This document shows, one piece after another, positions 1,323-53,513 of a stretch of DNA of 64,000 nt (positions are counted from its first letter, which is position 1; every line of letters begins with the position of its first letter). The DNA lies in NCBI GenBank assembly GCA_977017575.1, contig CDRNVI010000072.1:1-64000 (forward strand), written 5' to 3'. The notes beneath the pieces are model-generated. The model was given only the letters and a program-made list of their open reading frames with translations. It searched no databases and was not told the DNA's origin. The translations under genes were made by a program, and so were the position numbers. This DNA is from Paramoeba atlantica. Its lineage: Eukaryota > Protista > Discosea.

Positions 1323-1384
1323 GCATACTAAGCGGCACATTGATAATGCATACAGCACATTGATAATGCATATAGCACATTGAT
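1323..1384. repeat. ~3 x 20-bp repeat (GCACATTGATAATGCATATA) at the centre of a large inverted repeat
   Basis: Direct reading. Confidence 0.85.
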
Positions 1385-2630: not shown

Positions 2631-3450
2631 TTATGACTTGGCGCACTTACCCGGTTTTTTAGGGTCGTACGCCACGTTATGGATATGCTCCTTAAGCCAG
2701 TCTCTGCGGGCTTTTGTACACTCAACCATACCGCACCCTTTACTACACAAACACTCATCCTCATCACTTTTAGGTTTTAAACTTGAATATATCATAGAAT
2801 CAAAATCATACTGCGGCTTGTTAACCAGCAGACCGTACGTTACTACAGATACAATTGAAGGGCGTCTCGGACCCAAGGAATATCATGGTCAGTACCATGA
2901 AAAAAAACGAAACCTGTCAAAATGAGCAAAACATCGATCAATTCGAGACCGAATCAATGAAATTCTTTGGTTAAGCTGCTTTTGCGATTTGGTCAGACCA
3001 GAGATTTTTTTATAGGGTACAAGGCAGTGTGCACAACCAATGTACCCTAAATCAGCCAAAAAAAGGTCGTCCTTGTGGTGATCAAATACAGGAGTACGAT
3101 GCACACTCGTACTTTGGTAAATTTTCGCATCGTGGATGCTACCAACAACGGGTCTCCGAAAAAAAATTGGAACCCCGCCAACGTCAGCCAAAACTCTACC
3201 TTAAGCAGTGCTGGCGATGCTTTCCAGAGTAGGTGCTCTCTCGGGAACAGAGTTCTCCCGATGTCTTGTCCCGTACTTCTTTTGGCTTTCGTGCACGACA
3301 CGGAATTGTCGTGACGTCGAGCATGCAAGTAACATCAGGGAGCCAGGCGATTGCTTGAGTAAAACGAAGGTTGGGGTCCATGAGGTTGGGTGAGTGGCAC
3401 AGCTGTGCGACACGAGCGAAATCTTGTCGGAGAGTCCGGATAGAAACTGA
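2631..3450 (-). pseudogene. PIF/Harbinger (DDE_Tnp_4) transposase pseudogene
   Basis: Motifs LDVTTIP, YSGKHRQHCL, GSIHDAKIY, LADLGYIG, PYKK..LTKSQKQLNQRISLIRSRI; frameshift near 3195, stops near 2890; N-terminus cut at 3451. Confidence 0.85.
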
Positions 3451-4158
3451 AGTCAAAGTATAGGAATATTGCATAAGTATAGGAATATTGCATAAGTATA
3501 GGAATATTGCATAACTCTATTTTTGACCCCCCACCCCTTAATATGAGTTTCTTGATTTCGGTAGACAATTATAACCGTTGTATAGATCTGCGATTACACT
3601 GTCGGGAAACCACCTATTTTTTGTAATTTGAAACAAATTTTTACAAAGTCAAGGGTGGTATATTTCTCGAAAATATGCGATTTTTTTTATTTGTTACGTG
3701 CCTCATAGACTTGTAACCCCGGGAAAATGGAATACTGAACATATGGACGCTATAACGTACCCTAATCTATCACTTTGAACTACTTTTACTTCGAATGAAG
3801 ACTTCACATATAAGGGGTGACCCTTCCAAAATGCCCTAAAATGGCCACTTTTCGTGGATTTTGCTTAAAAAAGCCCACTTTCACCTGTTTTTGGCTACTT
3901 TGGCGGGGTCACCCCCTATATGCAACTTTTCCATTTTTAGAAAATGTGATGTGCGTATATACTTTGGAGTCTCATCTACAAGGAAAAGGATTTGTAAGAT
4001 CCAATACAGGTGGGATCTTGCCAGGAGAAATTTTTCAAAAGTTAAAAAAAAATTAGAGGGGCTCTGCAATATTCCTATACTTATGCAATATTCCTATACT
4101 TATGCAATATTCCTATACTTATGCAATATTCCTATACTTATGCAATATTCCTATACTT
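3451..4158. mobile_element. Non-autonomous element bounded by inverted arrays of a 19-bp repeat (Merlin-type ends)
   Basis: 3 x AGTATAGGAATATTGCATA at 3457-3512, 5 inverted copies at 4064-4158; similar arrays bound the Merlin at 26609-28210; no TSD recognised. Confidence 0.65.
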
Positions 4159-4239
4159 CGGAACAGCACATTCACATGCATAAAGTTTTAGGCACCGATT
4201 TCAACTTTTGCCAAAAGTTGGTGCGGGGTGCTATGGGAA

Positions 4240-4599
4240 CTCACCTTTGCTCCCGGTGAGGCCCCGGAGTTGCGAGAGGCCTCCATACCCCACAACTACC
4301 ACCTTCCCCCCCCTATTTAGCGGGGGTTCGCGCGAGCGACCCCTGATAAATGGGGGGAAGGTGGTAGTTGTTTTGGGGAATATGAGAGGCCGAACGCACG
4401 GAGGGGCCGGCGGGCCACTGAGTCACGTGAAAGTGTGACACCCAAAAACTAAACCTAGATCTTGTTTGCACAACAGAACCGTAAATGGCACGTAAAGATA
4501 GTTGGCCGGGGATTGTGTATTTATTTTCCTATGCATTGTCACGTTCTTTACCTTTTGGGGGCAAATTGTGAACGTCGACCAGAAAAGGGGCATTCTAAA
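4240..4599. repeat. Family-D dispersed repeat with ~90-bp internal hairpin
   Basis: Reverse-complement copy at 8331-8740 and partial copy at 26765-26945; arms CAACTACCACCTTCCCCCC/GGGGGAAGGTGGTAGTTG. Confidence 0.8.
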
Positions 4600-5594
4600 C
4601 ACTGTCAACATGGGTAACCAACTTGAAGGTATACAGGATACGGAATGAAATAACCTGTACTTTCTGCGGGAAGAAATTTCCTCCTGCGTGAAGAAATAAC
4701 GACGGTACACATGGACACAAAAAATAACGAGCCTTACTCCGAGTCACTACTTTCGTCTTCTTGCCTGCACAAGGGGTGACCCTCGTAAAATGGGCGAAAA
4801 CGGCGAAAAACGACCATTTTTCACGAAATTGTCCAAAAATGGTCATTTTTTGCGATTTTCAAGGGGTTACCCCTTACATGAAAACCGCTCATTCAAAGTT
4901 TTGTGAGTACACACGAACAGTTTAAGACCTGAAGAAGGCCCTATGTGATCCCTTTTCAACATTACGCGCAGTACAGAGACATCGTAAGGTCAACATCGCC
5001 GAAAAAGGTATTTTTTTGGCAAAATGTCATGCACATTGTTGCCTCCAAATATTCTCCCCAGGACCCAAACCAGGGGGTAATTCGGTAGTATAATGACAGA
5101 TCTGTATGATGGTGCTATACATGAGTCGCAATGGACCAACTCATATAAAGGGGGTCCCTGCTAAAAATTGACTTCTGCAAAAGTCCTTGACTTATGCAAA
5201 AGTCCTTTACTTTGACCCAGTGTACTTGGTAGGCATGAAGTGATCTCTTTACGACTTCATGCCGCTCAAGGCTGAACGTAGCTAGTCCGGAAAGGTTTCA
5301 CCGAGGTTTTGCGAGGTTTCATCGAACTTTCGCGAGGCCCTCAAACGAAAAAAGGCGAATCACATCGGATTTCTCCGGTTGGGTTCTCCGCATTTGGTGT
5401 TTCGAGATCGACTAGGAACGCAACTCGGCCAAGCCTTGGCGATGGGAAGCAATACAATAGTTGGCAACAGTTAGCTGGTTACAGTAGTTGGTATTTTAGA
5501 GAGTTTTTTAGAGTTGGTATTTTTTAGAGCCGTGCGTGGAGTTATCGGAAATCCGGAACCTCGTCGCCCGCAGTCTTTGCATTTTTTCGGAAAA

Positions 5595-5667
5595 TGCGAA
5601 CTGTGAGGATCGAACTCACGACCTTGGGATTATGAGACCCACGCGCTGCCGACTGCGCCAAATTCGC
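5595..5667 (-). tRNA. tRNA-Met(CAT), elongator type
   Basis: Cloverleaf: acceptor GCGAATT/AGTTCGC, loop CTCATAA, T31-T39 pair, T-arm GTGAG-TTCGATC-CTCAC, downstream TTTT. Confidence 0.95.
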
Positions 5668-5742
5668 CCCTGTCGTTCGACGCACAAGCTCTAGATTCAT
5701 TCTTGTTTTCATGTCACAAGATGTGACGTCGCTGGCGGTGAT

Positions 5743-5815
5743 GCCCCAGTGGCCTAATGGTTAAGGCGTCGGATTTCTAATCCGGAGATTGCGGGTTCGA
5801 GTCCCGTCTGGGGTA
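5743..5815 (+). tRNA. tRNA-Arg(TCT)
   Basis: Acceptor GCCCCAG/CTGGGGT, loop TTTCTAA, GTTCGAGTC, downstream TTTT. Confidence 0.95.
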
Positions 5816-5828
5816 TTTTCATCGAAAA

Positions 5829-5910
5829 TGCTGGAGTTGGGATTCGAACCCACGAAGCAATCGCAGTGGATCTTAAGTCCACCCCCTTTGACCAACTCGG
5901 GTACCCCAGC
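5829..5910 (-). tRNA. tRNA-Leu(TAA)
   Basis: GTGGA-CTTAAGA-TCCAC anticodon arm, long variable arm, GTTCGAATC. Confidence 0.95.
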
Positions 5911-5967
5911 GTGCCATGCCTTCCTTTGAGACTCTGGGTAACCGAGTAGGCCAGCATTGACTAAAAA

Positions 5968-6049
5968 CGCAGACGGCAGGGTTCGAACCTACGCATGCAG
6001 AGCACAACTCCTTAGCAGGGAGTCCCGTTAACCACTTCGGTACGTCTGC
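5968..6049 (-). tRNA. tRNA-Ser(GCT)
   Basis: Acceptor GCAGACG/CGTCTGC, ACTCC-CTGCTAA-GGAGT, long variable arm, discriminator G. Confidence 0.95.
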
Positions 6050-6689
6050 TTGACGATGTTCCTGGCAGATTCTAACTGGCCGTGATACCGCTAAATTTTT
6101 GTCCAGTCGCGCATTGTTCCGTCACGGGCGCCTTTCATGACGTCCTTGTGCTTGGGATTAAGTGGGCGCCGTGACCTCTGGTAGCTCCTGCATTTTGCTT
6201 ACCCTCGCAATCAACTAAATATTTGGAACCGTCCCGACGGCGTTACTTTTTTTTCGCACGATAACACACTGAATTCCCTGAGTTTCCTCACAACGTTGCT
6301 TGTGTTTATGCATGCTGTTTCTGCGCCTTGGTACATTTTGCTAGCCCTTTCTTTTCCAGGAAACGGGCATATATTTTCCCTTTTCATGCCCGTTTACGGC
6401 TTTGTCGTGGAAGTAGGGGACGTACTTCCGACTCTTCACCCCTCCCCGGCTGACTCCTTGAGTGAGTTTTCTTCCCTCCCCGGCTCTCTGTGTCTCGTGC
6501 TCTCTTCTCCCGAGAGCTATGCGCCATAGTCGTCTTCTTTGAGGGCCACTGGGCCTGGCACTGTATCGTCTTATCTCGAAGCAGCGGTCGGTTACAGTAC
6601 GGCCCTCCGGCTGCGTAAAGAGGCAGTTTTGGCCTAAAACTCGAGTAAATACTCGAGGTATTTTCGCCCAAAAAAGCTAGATGTTCAAG

Positions 6690-7203
6690 CATGGGTCATT
6701 TTGGGAGGCGTGCCACGGCTCCAAGGAGGGGTATCTTGTGAAAAGAACGTTACCTTGTGAAAAATAGCCGATTTTCGGTTAAAATTGGGGTATTTTTGCT
6801 CTCTGAGCACTAAATCCGACATTTGCGTGTGGGAAATCACTCGTAGGCTAGAATCAAATCCTACAGAACGCAATCGGCAGAGAATGCGAATCCAACCACG
6901 CCATTCTTCCGGGACAAAAAGACCCCAAACTCCTCAAAATATAGGCAAAATGATTTAAAAAAAAATGTTGCTATTTTTTTCGCCGAGTTTAAATTTTATT
7001 CAATTTTGTTCTTCTAAAAAAACGAATTCTGAAAAAAGGTAAACAAAAACAGTGAAAACGGTGTAGAAAGCTAGAATAGGTCCCAAGCTATCAAAATACA
7101 ATAGGCGAAACGATTTTGGAAAAATATTTTTTTTACAATTTTTTTCGTCAAGTTGAAATTTTTTTCAAACAAAAAATTCGAAAAAATCCGAACTTGACGG
7201 ACC
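6690..7203 (-). mobile_element. Diverged internal fragment of family A
   Basis: Shares GCACTAAATCCGACATTTGCG..GTGGGAAATCACTCG and CTATCAAAATACAATAGG blocks with 520-970. Confidence 0.7.
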
Positions 7204-8068
7204 ATATCATATTCCCATATCATTTCGCGGGTCCATAAAATCTTTAAAAACAATTGCACAGCGAGGAGAAGAAGATGTACGAGGGCGTTGCAATCCGAAT
7301 GATATGAAGCGATGCGCAACGCTTATCTGCGGTGCTGGCGTGAAACTGGATAAAAATGGAAGTCCAACGAGTCATTTCTTTCTAAAACCTTTTATCGTGT
7401 GGAAAGGAGCTGGAAAAGGATCTAGTCACGAGATATTTGATGCAAGGACGGCTCGAGCTTTTACTCCGAAAGGTGTCGTGAACAAAGATTTTTTTCTCCA
7501 AGACTTTATTCCCTTTCTCAAACGTGAACTGGATATAAACGACGCAGGCCGCACTTTAATTTATCTAGACTCCTGCCGATCTCACATAACAAGTGACGTT
7601 CTCGATGCGTTTGCCACTGTGGCTAACTGCTATTGTGTCATATTACCCCCTGCAACAACATCCTGGATCCAATGGATTGATGTATTTTATGCTTCTTCGT
7701 ACAAACGCGAGCAAGTAAACATTTGGCACAGAGAACAACATGTCCGTCGGACCGCCCGCCAAAAAAGACACTGGATGGATAATGCCGTTGCCCGAGCGCA
7801 CGGACAAGTTATAAACCTCGACAACGACTCTCTTGATGAATCAGGGACCCTTTCCTCTTCTATGAACGTTGTTCAACAATTCAAAAGCTTGGGGTATATC
7901 GACCCTTGTGATGCATCGTGGTCGCATGTGAAATGTTTAGAAGGATATGTCTTTGTTCCACCAAGCGATGACGATGAGAGAGACGAAGCTAAGAGAATCG
8001 AAGATGCCTTTAAGCGTGGGAAAAGCGTCCAGGCACGAAAATCATTCCAAGGACGGCTCGATAAATAG
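7202..8068 (+). pseudogene. 5'-truncated pogo-like (DDE_1) transposase, DD36D
   Basis: Frame open upstream of the annotated ATG to ~7202 (KTIAQRGEEDV...KRCATLIC); LIYLDSCRSH and LPPATTSWIQWIDV; no DNA-binding N-terminus. Confidence 0.8.
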
Positions 8069-8330: not shown

Positions 8331-8740
8331 TTCCGTCCCCCGGTTTACCACCTTCCCCCCTATTTAGAATGCCCCTTTTCTGGTCGACGTTCACAATTTG
8401 CCCCCAAAAAGGTAAAGAACGTGACAATGCATAGGAAAATAAATACACAATCCTGCGGCCAAACCACAATCCCCGGCCAACCATCTTTACGTACCATTTG
8501 CGGTTCTGTTGTGCAAACAAGATCTAGGTTTAGTTTTTGGGTATCACACTTTCACGTGACTCAGTGGCCCGGCCGGCCCCTCCGTGCGTTCGGCCTCTCA
8601 TTTTCCCCAAAACAACTACCACCTTCCCCTCATTTACCAGGGGTCGCTCGCGCGACCCCCGCTAAATAGGGGGGGAAGGTGGTAGTTGTGGGGTATGGAG
8701 GCCTCTCGCAACACCGGGGCCTCACCTGGAGGAAAGGTGA
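8331..8740. repeat. Family-D repeat, inverted relative to 4240-4599
   Basis: Reverse-complement alignment by eye; extra copy of the hairpin-arm motif at the far end (~8346-8367). Confidence 0.8.
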
Positions 8741-8967
8741 ATTTATCTAATTCCATTTTTTGGCAATGTTAAAAACCTAAAATTTCTAGTCAACCTCAAA
8801 TTTCGCGAACGCCAACCGAAAATGATCATATTTTTTAAGGGTTCAATTTTTTTTTAATGGGTCAAAAAAATTTTAAGGGCTCAAAAAAAATTTGAAGGCT
8901 CGATTTTTTTTCAACTTTTATGCCAGATAAAGGTGCAGAATTTTTTTCACTATTTAGCGCTTTTTTA

Positions 8968-9745
8968 TTTAGGTTCTTCGTTATACGCGGTGGTTGTTTT
9001 CAACTTAGAAGTCACTAATGCTGCGCGCTTCACGTTGAAAACTACCACCGCGTATAACGAAGAGCCTAAAAAAGAAAAATCGCCAGAAAATCATGAATAA
9101 TCTAGTTTTTCGGGTGAAAACCCTCGATTTTTCGCCAAAAATTGCGAAACCCGAAATTGGGATGTTTTTGATGCCTTACCAGTAGGGGCAGGAGGTGAAT
9201 CTGTCAAACAAAAACGTCGTAGAATGGTAGCTGGGGTCCCAAACTCCTAAAACACGTTTTAGGAGTCGATTTTGGAAAAATAATATTTTTGCTCTTTTTT
9301 GGGTCAAAAAAAGATTTTTTTTGGTCATCCCAAAAAATTTCGGAATTTTTGACCTTGTCGGACCCCTCCCGCGCGTACCAGGGGGGGTTACCCCAAGGTG
9401 GGGGGGTGGAAAGTCATCGCCGCGGCCTACTCTACCACTTCCCTGCGCTCGATTTCGAAAATCAAGATCCCCCCCTGGATCCCCCCCTGGATCCCCCCCT
9501 GGATCCCCCCCTGGATCCCCCCCTGGACCCCCCCCCATGGACCCTCCCCATGGACCCCCCCCTTGGACCCCCCCCTTGACCCCCCATTTTTTTCAATTTT
9601 TTTTTTCAATTTTGGACCACCGGGCCCCCACTTTATATTTTTTTCTTCTATTATATTACTGTGTTCCTCTTTATATTTTCACTGTTTTTGTTCACTTTTT
9701 TTTCAATAATCGAGGGTAGAGCGGTAGTTATACAACCACCGCAAT
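8968..9745 (-). mobile_element. Family-A variant (same ends, different internal segment)
   Basis: Palindrome ~8968-9080, GGATCCCCCC VNTR, terminal CAACCACCGCAAT; internal segment shared with 13450-13680 and 47380-47600. Confidence 0.8.
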
Positions 9746-9884
9746 AAATTGCCCTATTCTTGGGATTTATAAATACTTCTTATTTATACAGGAAATCGTT
9801 GCTCCTCGATTATTATTATTTTCCTCGAAATGCAAAGCAAAGCGAATAGGTTTCAGATATTTTTTTTACTGAAAGCTAAGAATT

Positions 9885-10877
9885 ATGACCTCACGTCGGA
9901 AAAGAAGTGCTACAGAGTCTTTTGGAAACATGGAACACTTTACAAGTGTTGGCAACCGTCCTGCACCTCATTGGTTGGCAAAACAATTTGGCGTTACATA
10001 TGTATGTCGGTTACACATGTATGTCGGTAAAGCTCTGGAAAACTTATGCAAGGGTGACAAGCGCAGCGCTACGTTGATAGCTGCTGTTTCATTGGCAGGT
10101 TCCATATTAGACCCATTCATTATATGGAATGGTGTAGAAACCCATAGTGGTGCACATGTTCGTACTGCTTCTAGCTCCGTACAGTATCAAACTTCCAATC
10201 ACTACATTTCTACTGGGGCACTACTTGAGTTTATCCATTGCATTTTGCACCCCTATTACATTCAATTGCGTAATGAGAAGAAGTTTGTAATGAAGGTGCC
10301 TTTGATACTTCTCATCGACTGTTGCAGTGTTCACATTAGCTCGAGTACTAAAGAGCAGATTATTCATGAATGTCGAGAAGGTGGTGCATTTGACTGGTTA
10401 AGAATAGTGTATGTTCCTGCGAGATGCACTGGAAAATTTCAGCCTTGTGATGTTGGTGTTTATGATCGACTTAAACAAAGGTTACGTTATGAGCGCTCAA
10501 ACGTATTGCTAAAGTATTGCCGTTATTGTAAAATCAAAGGGAGAACAAATTGGGACAAAACGCTCGGGAACAAGATATCCAAGGAGCAGCTCCTTGAGTC
10601 CATCACACTCTCGTACAACCATATGAGAAGCCCTAAGCAATGTGCCGCTACTCCAAGCGCCTGGGAAAAGTGTGGAATAACTGTGGAGACATTAGAAGGC
10701 AGATCGAATTCCACGGAAGCTTGGACACGTCGCCGTGAATTGTTTCCTCATCTTTATGAGCAAGATATTGCAGCTACACAGGATGAAACAGATATCTCGG
10801 ACGAAGACTGGGAGGCCGAGGTGCCCAATGACCTTGATACACAATCACACTTGGGGTTTCCGGCAGTTAAAAATTAA
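9885..10877 (+). pseudogene. pogo-like (DDE_1) transposase remnant, DD43D
   Basis: DKRSATLIAAVSLAG...PFIIW, LLIDCCSVH, YVPARCTGKFQPCDVGV; no HTH or first Asp recognisable. Confidence 0.75.
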
Positions 10878-11227
10878 ATTAGCCTTATTCATAGTTTTCA
10901 CTATGGATTTCCGTGTACCAAAATATTTTGCTTTTTTAATTGGAAAGGTGTTTTATTTCTTCGATATCATTTTGAATTTGGGTTGAATTTGGGAAGACCC
11001 ACCAAAAAAACTAGGCAGAGAGAATCTTTCTCTTCCCCTATTCCGCTTTTTTACCTCTTTGTTTTTTATCTTCACAAAGATTTGGGTTACTTTACAATGG
11101 GCGGTACTGTATTGGTGTCATTTTTTATGTCTAAGAAGTATCAGTGCTAGGCTTTTTCTCCGGCTGAAGTTTCTGAATCCCTTTTTTGTCTTCGACGGAT
11201 AAAGATACCGTTTCTGTAAAGCACGCT

Positions 11228-11335
11228 TCACTGAAGCCTGACACACTCAGCATGGGGAAGTGTGGTCGAGACCTCCTCGCGGTCTTCCCTGGCACTACCA
11301 TCTTTCAGGTGCTAACTCCGACCTCTTTTGGCACC
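11228..11335. repeat. ~100-bp dispersed repeat E
   Basis: CAGCATGGGGAAG..GGTCG.GACCT.CTCGCGGTCTTCCCTGGCACTACCATCTT recurs at ~49885-49985. Confidence 0.75.
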
Positions 11336-11462
11336 ATAGTGACTAGACATACCTACGTCGTACTACCTACGTAGTAGCTAGTACTACTAGCTAGTACTAC
11401 TACCTAACTAGTAACTAGTACTATGAATACCGTTTACTTTGGACACCTCGGGTCTGCAGCAC

Positions 11463-12634
11463 TTAAAAACTAATTATAAATATAAATAAAAATTCAAAAA
11501 GTTTATAATTTATATTATAATTAGTTATTAGAGGGGGGTAATCTAATTCACTTGTAGCGATGTGTTGCGCGAGTTCAACGGTGCTAAGACCCAACACTTG
11601 GGTAGAGATGTTCAATTGTTCCGTACAATCCTCAGACTCTGAGGAGCTGTCCACCAAAAGGAGTGGACGAAGACCGGAAGGATACTCTTTCAAGATCATC
11701 TTCTCTAAATCAAGGGGGGAGTCATTTACCAGCACTTCCATGGGTCGCTTGTTAATCTCCTTGGCAACTTGACGAACTTCGTCTTGTGTCAATCCAGTGA
11801 AGAGAAATTTTTTGTGGAAAAACACACGCACACGACCATTAAAGTTTTCGACCCCCCCTTTCCCCAACTGGCATACGGCTTGCAGAAGAATGACTCGCAG
11901 CCATAAGTCCCATTCACCACTTCGTGCTTGGCAAACTCCGTACCATTATCGTATGTAATGGTCAGTACCTGATAACCCTGCAGAGCTTCCACTATTGATT
12001 GCGCAACGTGGTCTGACTTTTTGGAAGATATGCCGAATTTGAACAATGTGCCGAATCTGCTTTTCCGCTCAACAAGACTTAGCATATACTGGCTCTGCTT
12101 GGTACCTTCAATGAGGTCTGCCTCCCAGTCCCCGTAACGCTGACGATCATTCACAACCTGAGGTCGTTCACTAATATGCACCCTATTAGGAATTTTAAGA
12201 CGATTGACCCCACGGCGACGTTTATATCCACGCCTACCCCCACGGCGTAAAAGTTTCGACAAGTGACCTCCAGCTGCTTCATCTCGCTCTAAGAAGTTAT
12301 ATATTGCTTTGCGGGATACCTTGATTTTGTGCTCCTTCCACATAGTTACGCTGATCTGTTGTGGGCTGTAACGGCGCGTCAGAAGATCCGTCACAATTCC
12401 AATTACTTCGTTTTCAATTTTACGGGGTCGTACCATTCTTTGTTTCATTTTGTTCTGGGCAGTGCGCTCCGCCAAACGAGCATCGTACACTCCCTTTTTG
12501 CAACCACGTTTTGTCTCGCGACTTATACACGATTGATGGACATTCAAACGCTCCGCAATCTCTGCTTTAGACAACTCTTCGTTGTTATAAAGCAATTCGA
12601 TTTGCGCTCGGTCAGTTGAGTCAAGTCTCTTCAT
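11463..12634 (-). mobile_element. IS30-family transposase gene (~390 aa) split by one -1 frameshift at ~11858
   Basis: HTH (KAEIAERLNVHQSCISRETKRG), YSPQQIS, ISERP..R...GDWEADL, LVERKSRF, TITYDNGTEF, PYASW.KG.VEN.NG, INKRP; D-33-E spacing once frames are joined. Confidence 0.9.
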
Positions 12635-12682
12635 GCGAACGGTGAATAAAAAGGAAAACTGGTGTATACAATATCTAATTCT

Positions 12683-12920
12683 GCAATATGCAATATAATG
12701 GTGCATTATGCAATATAAACGTGATTATGCAATATAATGGTGCATTATGCAATATAAAGGTGATTATGCAATATAAAGGTGATTATGCAATATAAAGGTG
12801 CACTATGCAATACAAAGGTGATTATGCAATATAAAGGTGCATTATGCCAGATCAAGGTGTATTATGCCAGATAAAGGTGAATTCATGCCAGATAAATGTG
12901 AATTCATGCAATATAAAGAG
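12683..12920. repeat. ~12 x 19-20-bp repeat (GGTG(C)ATTATGCAATATAAA)
   Basis: Direct reading; starts ~50 bp upstream of the IS30 ATG. Confidence 0.9.
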
Positions 12921-12924
12921 CCAC

Positions 12925-13680
12925 TTTTTATGCAAGATAGTGGTGCGGGTGCCAACACGTTCGGTAGACTTGAATTCATGCGCACGAGTGATTTCCCACA
13001 TGCAAGTGTGGGGTTCGGTGCTCTCGGAGCAAAAATAAGCAAAAATACCCGAAAATAGGCTTTATAACTCCAATTTTTGACTCAAATCCTTCCGGTTTCT
13101 TCGGCTTTCCTGGCCAAATTTTTCTTTTTTAGGCTCTTCGTTAAACGCGGCGGTAGTTTTCAACGCGAAGCGCGCAGCAGGAGTGACTTCTAAGTTAAAA
13201 CCAACCACCGCGTTTAACGAAAAGTCTTTATGAGATATGCAAGTAGCGTCCGCCAGGTTCGGATTTTTTCGGAAAAAAAAATTTGAAAAAAAATTCAACA
13301 TGGCGAAGAAAATGGCAAAAGAAAAATTGTTTCGAAATCCTTTGTCCTATTATATTTTGATAGTTTGGGTCCTATACTAGCTTTCCACGCCGTTATTTTC
13401 GCAAGATATCCCTTCTTCGAGCCGTGGTAGGCCTCCTAAAATAATTTTCCACCCCACCTGGGGGTGACCCCCCCTGGTACGCGCAGGAGGAGTCCGACAA
13501 GGTCAAAGTTTTTGGGATGACCAAAAAAAAAACATTTGACCAAAAAAAGTAAAAATATATTTTGTCCAAAATTCACTCCTAAAACGTATTTTGAGAGTTT
13601 GTGACCTCAGCTACCATTCTGCGACGTTTTTTTCGACAGATTCGCCTCCTGCCCCTACTGGTAAGGCATCAAAAACGGAA
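12925..13680 (+). mobile_element. Rearranged family-A fragments, palindrome at ~13120-13220
   Basis: Blocks match 1660-2250 and the reverse complement of 9170-9400. Confidence 0.7.
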
Positions 13681-17730: not shown

Positions 17731-17768
17731 CAACAAGGTACAGAAACTGTATCTTCATCGTTAAAGTT
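17731..17768 (-). other. Spliced-leader (mini-exon)-like sequence AACTTTAACGATGAAGATACAGTTTCTGTACCTTGTTG
   Basis: Exact CAGTTTCTGTAC core, AACT..AACG start and N4-TTG end as in kinetoplastid 39-nt SLs; not followed by a GT donor; 45 nt upstream of the ATG at 17685. Confidence 0.7.
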
Positions 17769-50740: not shown

Positions 50741-53513
50741 CTGTGCCCCCCTAGTTATCTGTAACACGTCACCCCCCTAGTTATCTATCACTTTTTGGAA
50801 CTTCGATTTTTTTTTTCGTCGACCTCATAAAATGAAACTTACATTTTTTCTTTTTGTGTTTCAAGCCAATGGTCGTGCGTGGTGCTATTATAAACCGTTT
50901 CTGTAATTCCATGTTCTGACTTTTTTTGTGACAGACACCCTCCCTAGGTATCTGTCGCACACTGATCCGCCTACCGTTACCCCCCCCTTACTTAGCCCCC
51001 ACTTTTTGGCCCAAAACCCATACTTTGTGGTGAAGTAAGGGGGGGTGGGGGGGGGGAAGTAAGGGGGGTGGTGAAGTAAGGGGGTGGTGAAGTAAGGGGG
51101 GTGGTGAAGTAAGGGGGGATTATTAAGTTGTCAAGTTCCTCCAGTAAAATCCTTATCGCCCGTCATGCTCACTTCAGGGTTGAACGAAACTTTCTGTTTC
51201 ACGCTTGCCATAGTTCGGAAAGATCATTGACTTTATAAAATGAATTAAAAGATCATTGACTTCTACAGAAAGTAACTAACATCATGAAAATACGCTACGC
51301 CCAAATTTAGTTTCTAATGTGCCGGCTTAAATATATAAAATAATGACAGAAAATATGATACCTATAGAGGCTTTGCAAGGCACTAAGTAGAACCACAGAA
51401 AAACTTAGATACGACGAATATTAAAAACGGTGCTGTGGACGTAAAACGCTGGGGAAGGTGAGGTGCGCTAAGCCCCAACACTGCCGAAAATATATGCAGT
51501 GGCCCTGACCTGCGGCCATCGTTAGTGCTTTGCGCAGAAATTGTCACTCTCTTCCCCCTTTTCTTCAATTGCACACATGTGATGAAATTTCGTTAAACAC
51601 CCAGGTTCACTACACTCGCGTAGAGTTAAATTCACTCGCGTGCAACAATAACACTCCTGTACTGGGGTTGCGTTAAGCGCTGAGTTCCTGTTACGCGCTG
51701 ACTCTATCGCGGACTTCATGGCTTTCGCTGCGATTGTGGGACTAATTCGATTTTTTATAGGAACGCGCGTTGGCAGACGAGGGACCTGATTTGGTTCAAG
51801 AGATTCCTCGACAATGCTCAGTTGTGATACGCGTGAAGCGATGGCTGATGCATCCACCATCGATTCCGTGATAACGCTTGAGGAGAGTCTGAGCTCGGCT
51901 CTGGATTCTATGGGAATCTGTGCGAGATTTTTGGTAAGTGCTGGAACAAGCAACTTATTAAATTCGATTTCGTATTCTTCTGAATTCACTTTTGCCAGAG
52001 CCTGGGTGGCAAATTTTGTTATAAGACTTCGCGTCGGCCGGACAATTTCATGATGCGTCGACGCACGCCATGAGGCAAAACACTCCTTGTAGTACTTTTT
52101 AAAAGGCTGGTTGATGGCCATATCCATGAGCTGTCCTTTGGAAGTGCAACCTCCTGGAACGAATTGAACATCGATTTTTCTCTCACGAAAGAACAATAAT
52201 AATTCCGCTGTCCGATGAGCAGCGTACAGATCCAAAATAATAAGTGTCTTCCGCGGACGATACTTCATTCTGTCAAAGAATTCCGCTTCAGCCCATTTTT
52301 TAAATGACTCTGCTGTGTTCCACCCGCTTGTCGTTGTTGCCGTACAATTGTACTTTTCTGCCGCCCGTAGCACCTCTTTGGAAACCTTCCCAGAATCTGA
52401 ATGGGCTTCCCAAATTAAGTGCGGAGGAAACACCTTATGCTCCCACGTGCTTTCTGCATGTTGGTTCGTAACAGAGCGGCCCCAAAACCACGCAGTCAGT
52501 GTCTTCTTCTCCTTCCCTGTAGTTAAAACCTTTACACGCTTTGTCCCTTTAGTGTCGTATGTGATTTCATTGACGGGCTCCCACACAACACAGGTCTCAG
52601 ACCACAATTTCGCAGAGCTATCATATTCAAAAAGGCTTCTATACGCTCGTCCATGTCTTTTGGGACCATTTGGGTTGCTCCATTGACTCTTCGTCGCGAA
52701 ATATTGGCGAAGGTGCAAAAACGAATCCAAAATTTTTCTTTTCCTTTGTCGGTAAGGGAACAGAAGTGCTCTGAAATTACAGCAAAGTACCCCAACATTG
52801 TCGGTTTCGTGACTGCCGAAAGAGACTCGCGTAGCAAAAGCAGTTGCGTCAACCCTTTTTCATATAATTCTTTATTTGCTCGGGGGGGATGATACTGAAA
52901 CAATTTCCCGAAGCCAAGTTGAGTAAATTTATGCCAATCTTCTTTTTTCCGATAAACTCTATGAACCGTGCTTACCTCGACCTTGTAATCTCGGGCGGCC
53001 ACGCTTACAGACTTGCCGGCATCTATACTAGCACATAGGTTGTTTTTTTGCTGTATGGTAAGATCCACCCGAACCTTCCGCGGCTGCTCAGCAAGCTGGT
53101 TAGATGCATTCAATATTAATGTGGTGGATGGCGTAGCTGAAGTATCATCGGGGAAGGGCAGTACGGCAACAGTTTCGTGTGGCAACGGTGAGGATAGAGT
53201 CACTTGGCTCGCGTTAAAGAATAGAAGTGGTGGGGCCATCGTGTATTGAATAAATATTGAAATCAATGAAAATTTACAGTTTCTGACCTGGGTTAACTAT
53301 CATCACAGAGTAGGAATCGGGGGAAAATTCTGGCACCCCCCTTACTTCACCACATACGGAGTGGCTAAATGTGGTGAAGTAAGGGGGGAGGTGAAGTAAG
53401 GGGGGAGGTGAAGTAAAGGGGGGTAACGGTAGTTATCTGTCACACCCCTACCCCCCCTAGTTATCTGTCACCTTTTCGCGAAAAGTAGTGACAGATAAGT
53501 AGGGGTGGTACAG
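50741..53513 (-). mobile_element. Near-complete pogo-like transposon (TA|CTGT termini, GTGGTGAAGTAAGGGGG subterminal arrays)
   Basis: ~25-bp imperfect TIR, TA flanks, internal transposase. Confidence 0.85.
51522..53266 (-). pseudogene. pogo-like DD35D transposase with C-terminal PHD-like finger, frameshifted at ~52600
   Basis: HTH (LTIQQK..AARDYKVEVSTV), ETCVVWE, ILDLYAAH, FVPGGCTSKGQLMD, C-terminal CYCC..C....C..KFHHMC..CAKH; lesion falls on the expected NCDET Asp. Confidence 0.88.

Follow-up and report, generated by a model that had tools for sequence, protein, structure and literature searches.

How does a gene for a bacterial-type transposase come to lie among eukaryotic repeats? The question was raised by the interval 11463-12634 of the window, that is, the whole 64,000-nucleotide stretch of protist DNA that we analysed. 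A first-pass annotation, made from the sequence alone, had recognised an IS30 transposase there and had offered two readings of it: either the gene had arrived recently by horizontal transfer, or it stood for a eukaryotic lineage of IS30 not yet described. Our analysis indicates that the locus is very probably a decayed copy belonging to a family of DNA transposons that use an IS30 transposase and reside in the nuclear genome of a protist. Taken by itself, the locus is an ordinary dead copy of a transposon; the interest lies in the family it reveals.

The minus strand of 11463-12634 encodes an IS30-family DDE transposase, in two overlapping open reading frames that lie in different frames. ORF A runs from an ATG at 12634 to a stop at 11789 and has an upstream in-frame ATG at 12706, which sits within a repeat array; ORF B extends from 11867 to 11463. 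The NCBIfam model transpos_IS30 (NF033563, cutoff of 80 bits) matched ORF A with 191 bits over model positions 1-227 of 267 and ORF B with 30 bits over positions 226-266, and jointly the two pieces represent positions 1-266. The Pfam domain HTH_38 (PF13936) was found at residues 26-68, with 32 bits against a cutoff of 27, and the Pfam rve and HTH_32 matches were below their cutoffs. According to these ORF, Pfam and NCBIfam data, frame A (11859-12634) carries HTH_38, HTH_32 and the two D residues of the catalytic core. The catalytic motifs read GDWEADL, TYDNGTEF and GGVENFNG. Counted on the uninterrupted paralog P0005, 33 residues separate DNGTEF from GGVENFNG, giving a DD(33)E arrangement that occupies the same alignment columns elsewhere. 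The presence of all IS30 motifs and of the D-33-E spacing, as the first-pass annotation had it, was thus borne out.

The annotation had also counted a single frameshift, and exactly one was found, a 1-nt shortening of a homopolymer. Indeed, pairwise DNA alignment showed a C7 at 11852-11858 (+ strand coordinates of this minus-strand gene) where a 97%-identical copy, L005, has eight, and L005 reads straight through the same junction with no frame break. The shift lies inside the W-E-K-G-G-V-E-N motif (WEKGGVENFNG), 2-3 codons before the catalytic E, and relative to L005 the window copy also bears an E>G change within that motif. The contig derived from the reads of run X1 crosses this site with 0 differences from the window; the site is a homopolymer, and run X1 may be the source data of the assembly.

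Downstream of the shift, frame B (11538-11851) supplies the catalytic E of VENFNG and the remainder of the IS30 core, followed by a conserved tail with RPLLLVDSSSESED, as defined by the model match, the L005 homology and the alignment. ORF B continues for 91 residues beyond the IS30 model. Of these, the leading 67 are kept in L005 and, partly, in four other subfamilies, and the final ~24 codons (11463-11537) are read-through into unrelated DNA outside the element. The latter do not belong to the gene, because the homology with L005 stops at 11538, exactly at the L005 stop codon. The extra C-terminus of about 75 residues noted earlier therefore held for the 67 family-conserved residues and not for the last ~24 codons. 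Equivalents of the tail were found in L001 (after an inserted retroelement), L002, L003 and P0004, with the motif RP-x-LLVDSS-x-E across the family. Its LLVDSSSESED stretch, hydrophobic and then acidic and serine-rich, may resemble a phospho-regulated SUMO-interaction motif.

On the 5' side of the ATG, direct reading of the leader (12635-12681, minus strand) showed no Shine-Dalgarno-like sequence and a pyrimidine-rich stretch, TTTTCCTTTTTATTCACC, in agreement with the initial description. In L002 and L003 a polypyrimidine tract followed by AG stands just before the ATG and is a possible trans-splice acceptor; no clear acceptor was seen 5' of the ATG in the window copy or in L001.

Since the protein family is otherwise prokaryotic, a bacterial contamination or a chimeric join in the assembly had to be considered. 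The read-derived contig of run X1 covered the gene and both of its sides (11274-12670) at a depth of 25, as compared with 20-21 in the unique flanks, and across this interval the reads contained no joint to foreign sequence, including the join to bacterial DNA that the first-pass annotation had named as the observation that would undo its reading. Neighbouring repeats reached depths of up to tens of thousands in the same run. As had been proposed, the flanks of the window copy are host repeats, found also on contigs with eukaryotic genes. The window itself holds LRR genes, ORFs of the pogo-like DDE_1 type and an uninterrupted 788-aa ORF for a phosphatidylinositol-4-phosphate 5-kinase (PIP5K, 191 bits). 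Nine related copies, with unrelated flanks, were found on contigs bearing kinesin, PIG-P, HSP90, adaptin, DEAH helicase, hAT, PIF and RT genes, which makes ten independent loci. The neighbouring HSP90 (compared with the PDB) and helicase (compared with the ESM Atlas) were eukaryotic, and Rfam matches were to tRNAs only. Host repeats are also nested in the copies: the ORF of L001 is interrupted by an SL-like insertion headed by CAGTTTCTGTACCTTGTT, and L005 is cut short by a palindromic MITE. Collectively, these data reduce contamination or misassembly to a negligible probability.

The closest database proteins, 53-86% identical, were all located on contigs of the ENA assembly ERZ24900291. These contigs carry the interspersed repeats of the window at 75-100% identity, which indicates that they derive from the organism of the window or from one very close to it. 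Among ~15 billion database proteins, all members of the clade come from this assembly, and a profile search of 1.84 billion representatives yielded further clade members in ERZ24900291 only.

Several features of the surroundings were recorded in passing. The pogo-like DDE_1 transposase ORFs lie at 9885-10877 and 51522-52730, the first being separated by 0.6 kb from the point where the IS30 copy is truncated. The insertion in L001 spans 8938-~9495, and the motif that heads it recurs at 17731-17749 (minus strand) of the window, at the head of a retroelement relic. This SL-like CAGTTTCTGTACCTTGTT would fit a spliced leader of the kinetoplastid or diplonemid type. The palindromic MITE, ~110 bp long, occurs in the window at 13117-13227 and 8961-9078 and is the same as the one truncating L005; its depth of ~50,000 in run X1, against 20-25 for single-copy sequence, implies thousands of copies. 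A 12-bp C-rich minisatellite, CCCCCCCTGGAC, forms ~9 copies at 9469-9585. In run X4, contig depth was zero over 11978-12508, within the IS30 body, and 19-35 over parts of the flanks; runs X3 and X4 carry an L005-type variant. The gap in X4 could be a strain difference, in data whose coverage is patchy.

How far does the element reach? The gene does lie at 11463-12634, the extent given at first, but the element ends at 11538 on one side and on the other continues through a 12-unit array to ~12951. Tandem Repeats Finder (TRF) and repeat analysis placed this 5' subterminal array at 12682-12946 (minus strand), with ~12 tandem units of 19-21 bp reading GCACCTTTATATTGCATAAT in gene orientation. The upstream minisatellite, which the first-pass annotation had missed along with the loss of a 3' arm and the foreign nature of the last codons, thus belongs to the element. 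A search of the window with a degenerate form of the unit, GCACNYTKATMNKKCATA, gave 12 matches where 0.01 were expected, all of them at three places. The 5' terminus in gene orientation lies at 12943-12951 (minus strand), where the + strand reads GTGCGGGTG and the element begins CACCCGCAC; homology between the window and L001 ends at 12953. The motif CAC(N)CGCAC / GTGCG(N)GTG is common to the 10 catalogued termini, which come from L001, L002, L003, L005, L006 and L092.

Homologous arrays stand directly 5' of the gene in L001, L002, L003 (24 units), L006 and L090, and inverted arrays lie 3' of it in L001, L002, L005, L006 and L092. Consequently, L001, L002 and L006 have inverted arrays on both sides, and the window copy, L003, L005, L090 and L092 have a single arm. 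An end comprises 2 to 24 tandem units of ~20 bp. The skeleton of the unit, GCAC-N8-TGCATAAT, that is, GCAC-N8-(T)GCATAAT, is kept throughout and the rest differs subfamily by subfamily, with versions reading GCACCTTTATATTGCATAAT, GCACCCTTATCTGTCATAAT, GCACATTCACATGCATAWAG, GCACACTGATAATGCATAAT and GCACATTGATAATGCATATA, so that unit and transposase vary together. The inverted repeats of bacterial IS30 are recognised by the N-terminal domain of its transposase. The array units are, from their position and their co-variation, probably binding sites of the transposase.

Between the ORF and the 3' array, the relatives have T-rich 19-bp repeats (TTTTTTAAGGGSTCRAA) and a ~170-bp palindrome. Complete elements measure 2.1 kb (L002), 2.5 kb (L001, including its inserted retroelement) and 4 kb (L006). 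L001 is alone in having both canonical ends, and the GGG on either side of it (GGG/GGG) says little about a target duplication, which in the IS30 family measures 2-3 bp. A G-rich (GG-rich) flank adjoins 9 of the 10 termini. In L002 the inverted repeat reaches past the arrays to an outer CCCCC(C/T)CGTTTAAGCGCAC pair at 7679-7697 / 9806-9824, so that the true terminus of this subfamily may lie further out.

The palindrome deserves a separate description. It was found at 8561-8746 and 4240-4439 of the window, at 9939-10146 in L001, 9356-9537 in L002 and 9385-9548 in L003. It stands between ORF and 3' array in every IS30-type subfamily and occurs also away from IS30 copies. Its nucleotide identity is 84-96%, despite saturated synonymous sites in the ORFs. 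Precisely at its centre, the homology between L003 and L092 passes from one strand to the other. The palindrome could be an independent MITE with an insertion preference, a cis element under constraint or a hotspot of recombination. As for L092, its contig holds two IS30-type copies of different subfamilies, tail to tail, at 3331-4790 and 5451-6919, as well as, at 8927, one more 3' end, this one of L001 type.

The window copy is decayed and immobile. The 3' UTR, the T-rich repeats and the inverted 3' array of its relatives are all missing, no inverted array unit was found within 10 kb downstream and a search for terminal inverted repeats (TIRs) around the copy returned no partner end. Since the family does have such ends, this reflects the loss of the 3' arm. 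An autonomous copy would have an uninterrupted ORF and two ends, and the window copy has neither. With its frame shifted just before the catalytic E and its entire 3' arm absent, the copy is dead, and with one end left it is immobile even in trans. No joint of abutted ends, such as a circle or an IS dimer would give, was present in the read data at this copy.

Two relics elsewhere in the window carry pieces of the same family. A 3' subterminal arm of the same subfamily, made up of the palindrome, the T-rich 19-bp repeats and one array unit, lies at 8561-8943 (+ strand), is 87-92% identical to 3333-3622 of L005 and is cut off by the MITE at 8961. Its orientation is opposite to that expected for the lost arm of the copy at 11538-12951, so that, as judged from the sequence, it would be the wrong way round to be the missing arm unless an inversion occurred. 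The other relic, detected by repeat and unit-pattern searches at 1335-1372 (+ strand), consists of L006-type array units at the centre of a ~0.9-kb foldback (396-2248), whose inverted repeat arms are 396-1323 and 1385-2248.

Read joints between 9650-9750 and 13117-13129 could have been taken for the sides of one large insertion at 9747-13116. We rejected this reading on three grounds: each side measures only 20-30 nt, the intervening letters are not constant, and the two points coincide with repeat boundaries at ~50,000x.

Most of the other copies are also damaged. The L001 ORF is split by the inserted retroelement, L002 has a premature stop, L004 has exchanged the catalytic glutamate (E>K), L005 combines a nonsense codon with a 5' truncation and L006 is frameshifted. 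One copy, L003, is apparently intact, with a 333-aa ORF that has all motifs and the tail, preceded by a 5' array; its contig ends before a 3' array would be reached. A sequence search of the intact ORF against the PDB gave no match.

To which lineage do these copies belong, and for how long has it been in the eukaryote? In maximum-likelihood trees, 8 of 8 eukaryote-borne sequences formed one clade with 100/100 support, on a stem of 0.88-0.92 substitutions per site. This clade was nested in another 100/100 clade with all 15 Verrucomicrobiota-labelled sequences. The phylogeny with bacterial IS30 that the first-pass annotation had suggested as a check thus placed the copies together within a Verrucomicrobiota-dominated part of bacterial IS30. 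The nearest bacterial IS30s came from Akkermansiaceae, Verrucomicrobiae and Opitutales MAGs, and the bacterial labels of these sister sequences rest on MAG binning. The best prokaryotic identity was <=48%, mostly to Verrucomicrobiota MAGs, and named plasmid IS30s such as ISAeca1 were <=39% identical.

Within the eukaryote-borne clade, at least four subfamilies were distinguished, namely window/L005, L001, L003/L091/L092 and L002/L004/L006, with L090 apart. Proteins of the eukaryote-borne copies differ by 33-48%. Between subfamilies, synonymous differences are saturated (pS 0.80-0.90) and nonsynonymous ones are much fewer (pN 0.16-0.30). Between the window and L005, in contrast, pS = pN = 0.023, on few sites. 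This pattern points to selection on an active lineage, followed by neutral decay of the inserted copies.

These values bear on the idea that a bacterial IS30 landed not long ago and is now decaying. It is true that membership of the IS30 protein family is as strong as in bacterial elements, the intact L003 ORF scoring 253 bits with transpos_IS30 over positions 1-266 of 267 and a verrucomicrobial IS 258 bits, and that the clade is known from a single organism. Yet a recent arrival would sit badly with a best bacterial identity of <=48%, a stem of ~0.9, deeply diverged subfamilies with saturated synonymous sites and rebuilt ends. The G+C content also speaks against it: that of the ORF is 47-48%, near the 42-43% of the surrounding window, whereas a verrucomicrobial relative has 57%. 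We therefore consider a recent horizontal transfer, the first of the two readings offered initially, very unlikely.

Another possibility was that the subfamilies go back to several separate transfers, from bacterial donors related to one another, with no diversification inside the eukaryote. Synonymous saturation between subfamilies does not tell where the divergence happened, and to that extent it leaves room for such a history. However, all subfamilies fall in one 100/100 clade that excludes every sampled bacterial sequence, and they share derived characters that the tested bacterial relatives do not have: the arrays, ends in CAC(N)CGCAC, T-rich repeats on the 3' side and the tail with LLVDSS. 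Repeated transfer is thus unlikely.

Could the gene instead be a host gene domesticated from a transposase? The strong purifying selection between subfamilies and the conserved, eukaryote-specific tail would fit. But the gene exists in multiple copies, every one with terminal arrays of its own; the majority are broken (window, L001, L002, L004, L005 and L006), and the youngest pair evolves neutrally. Domestication accordingly appears highly unlikely, slightly more so than a recent transfer. The resident transposon family is the reading we retain.

To see what distinguishes this family from its bacterial counterparts, three sets of closest relatives were examined in the same way, L016-L019 in detail. 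The closest bacterial relatives are 1,214-1,219 bp long. L016-L019 have a single ORF and imperfect inverted repeats of ~25 bp, and at each of four independent sites the target duplication is a clean 3 bp. The eukaryote-borne elements resemble them in having one ORF of ~320-340 aa with an N-terminal HTH_38 and a second HTH, a DD(33)E core with DWE-D, TxDNGxEF and WEKGxxENxNG, and a full-length HMM match of ~250 bits. In other respects they depart from bacterial IS30, beyond the limited protein identity. They are not compact elements of ~1.0-1.25 kb with a single 20-30-bp TIR per end, since they measure 2.1-4 kb, against 1.2 kb, and have 2-24 units of ~20 bp per end in place of one ~25-bp inverted repeat. 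They also have a long 3' non-coding region, the RP-x-LLVDSS-x-E tail and a host-like G+C, and they are housed in a eukaryotic nuclear genome. The match to the IS30 model, set beside these 1.2-kb relatives with single inverted repeats, indicates that the transposase is a bona fide IS30 enzyme and that the ends have been rebuilt.

Few prokaryotic IS families are known to have eukaryotic branches, namely IS630, IS5, IS256, IS1016/IS1595, IS1380, IS3 and IS481. Membership in the IS481EU or IS3EU groups was ruled out: the IS481 model gave 45-63 bits (cutoff of 224) and the IS3 model 26 bits (cutoff of 160), as compared with 191-253 for IS30, and the tree position was inside bacterial IS30. For these two groups, the grouping with an already described eukaryotic family that the first-pass annotation had said would contradict it was thus not observed. 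Still, there is a likeness with IS481EU, and with IS3EU/GingerRoot, in that a prokaryotic IS family with an integrase-like DDE enzyme has a clade of its own resident in a protist, beside particular prokaryotic members. The differences are the IS family, as told by the model scores, and the ends, which here are repeat arrays finishing in CAC..GTG, whereas IS481EU has TIRs of <50 bp, TNT..AYA ends and target site duplications (TSDs) of ~4, 15 or 25 bp (Kojima and Bao 2023, PMC10045372). The eukaryotic IS607-like sequences likewise represent a prokaryote-to-eukaryote transfer of an IS, with copies flanked by eukaryotic genes, but the enzyme of IS607 is a serine recombinase, and neither TIRs nor TSDs were detected (PMC3673617).

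In the P element, Ac/Ds, En/Spm and Foldback, many short repeats in inverted orientation lie near both ends. The likeness with the present arrays is architectural only, the transposases being unrelated, and by analogy the arrays would be a plausible platform for multi-site binding.

Earlier surveys did not report such a group. A search of all IS families against 430 eukaryote genomes recovered IS607 only, and no IS30 (Gilbert and Cordaux 2013, PMC3673617). Links of IS630, IS3 and IS481 to eukaryotic elements are listed by Kojima and Bao (PMC10045372) and in a 2026 archaeal survey (PMC13343696), with IS30 absent from both, and in Bao et al. 2010 IS30 figures solely among the bacterial relatives of integrases (PMC2836005). 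We found no paper describing eukaryotic IS30-type transposons in the full-text literature, a coverage that leaves out most subscription journals and Repbase, and the term "undescribed" is therefore provisional. With this proviso, the second reading of the first-pass annotation, an undescribed eukaryotic IS30 lineage, is the one that stood, on the multiple copies in subfamilies, the co-varying arrays, the nested host retroelements and MITEs and the lack of a matching group in the literature. A fuller proposal is that the family is a previously undescribed eukaryotic class II superfamily ("IS30EU"), derived from a Verrucomicrobiota-type IS30, rebuilt with multi-unit inverted arrays and a eukaryote-specific tail, and maybe, given the intact L003, still active in an SL-trans-splicing protist. 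Taken jointly, these parts make a proposal that we regard as moderately probable.

We saw neither an empty site nor an excision footprint nor an insertion polymorphism, contig coverage between samples being patchy, and transposition in the eukaryote is thus deduced from the structure of the copies. In the scenario that we envisage, an IS30 of the kind now common in Verrucomicrobiota would have entered an ancestor of the host once, become a eukaryotic cut-and-paste (or copy-out/paste-in) element and split into the subfamilies, at least four in number. The two N-terminal helix-turn-helix domains would bind the repeated ~20-bp units, and this binding would bring both ends of the element together. 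The DD(33)E core would then cleave at the CAC termini. Integration may take place in G-rich sites with a short duplication, as the GGG/GGG flanks of L001 and the GG-rich flanks of 9/10 termini suggest.

At the level of annotation, the family accounts for some of the foldbacks of this genome and for one class of ~20-bp minisatellites. If the proposal is true, IS30 would be added to the few prokaryotic IS families that have a eukaryotic branch. With the nearest bacterial relatives in hand, a direct before/after comparison is available, in which a 1.2-kb IS with single 25-bp ends would have changed into a 2-4-kb element with binding-site-like repeat arrays and an extended protein. Such a before/after pair would open to experiment the ways in which a bacterial transposase adjusts to chromatin, to import into the nucleus and to expression by trans-splicing.
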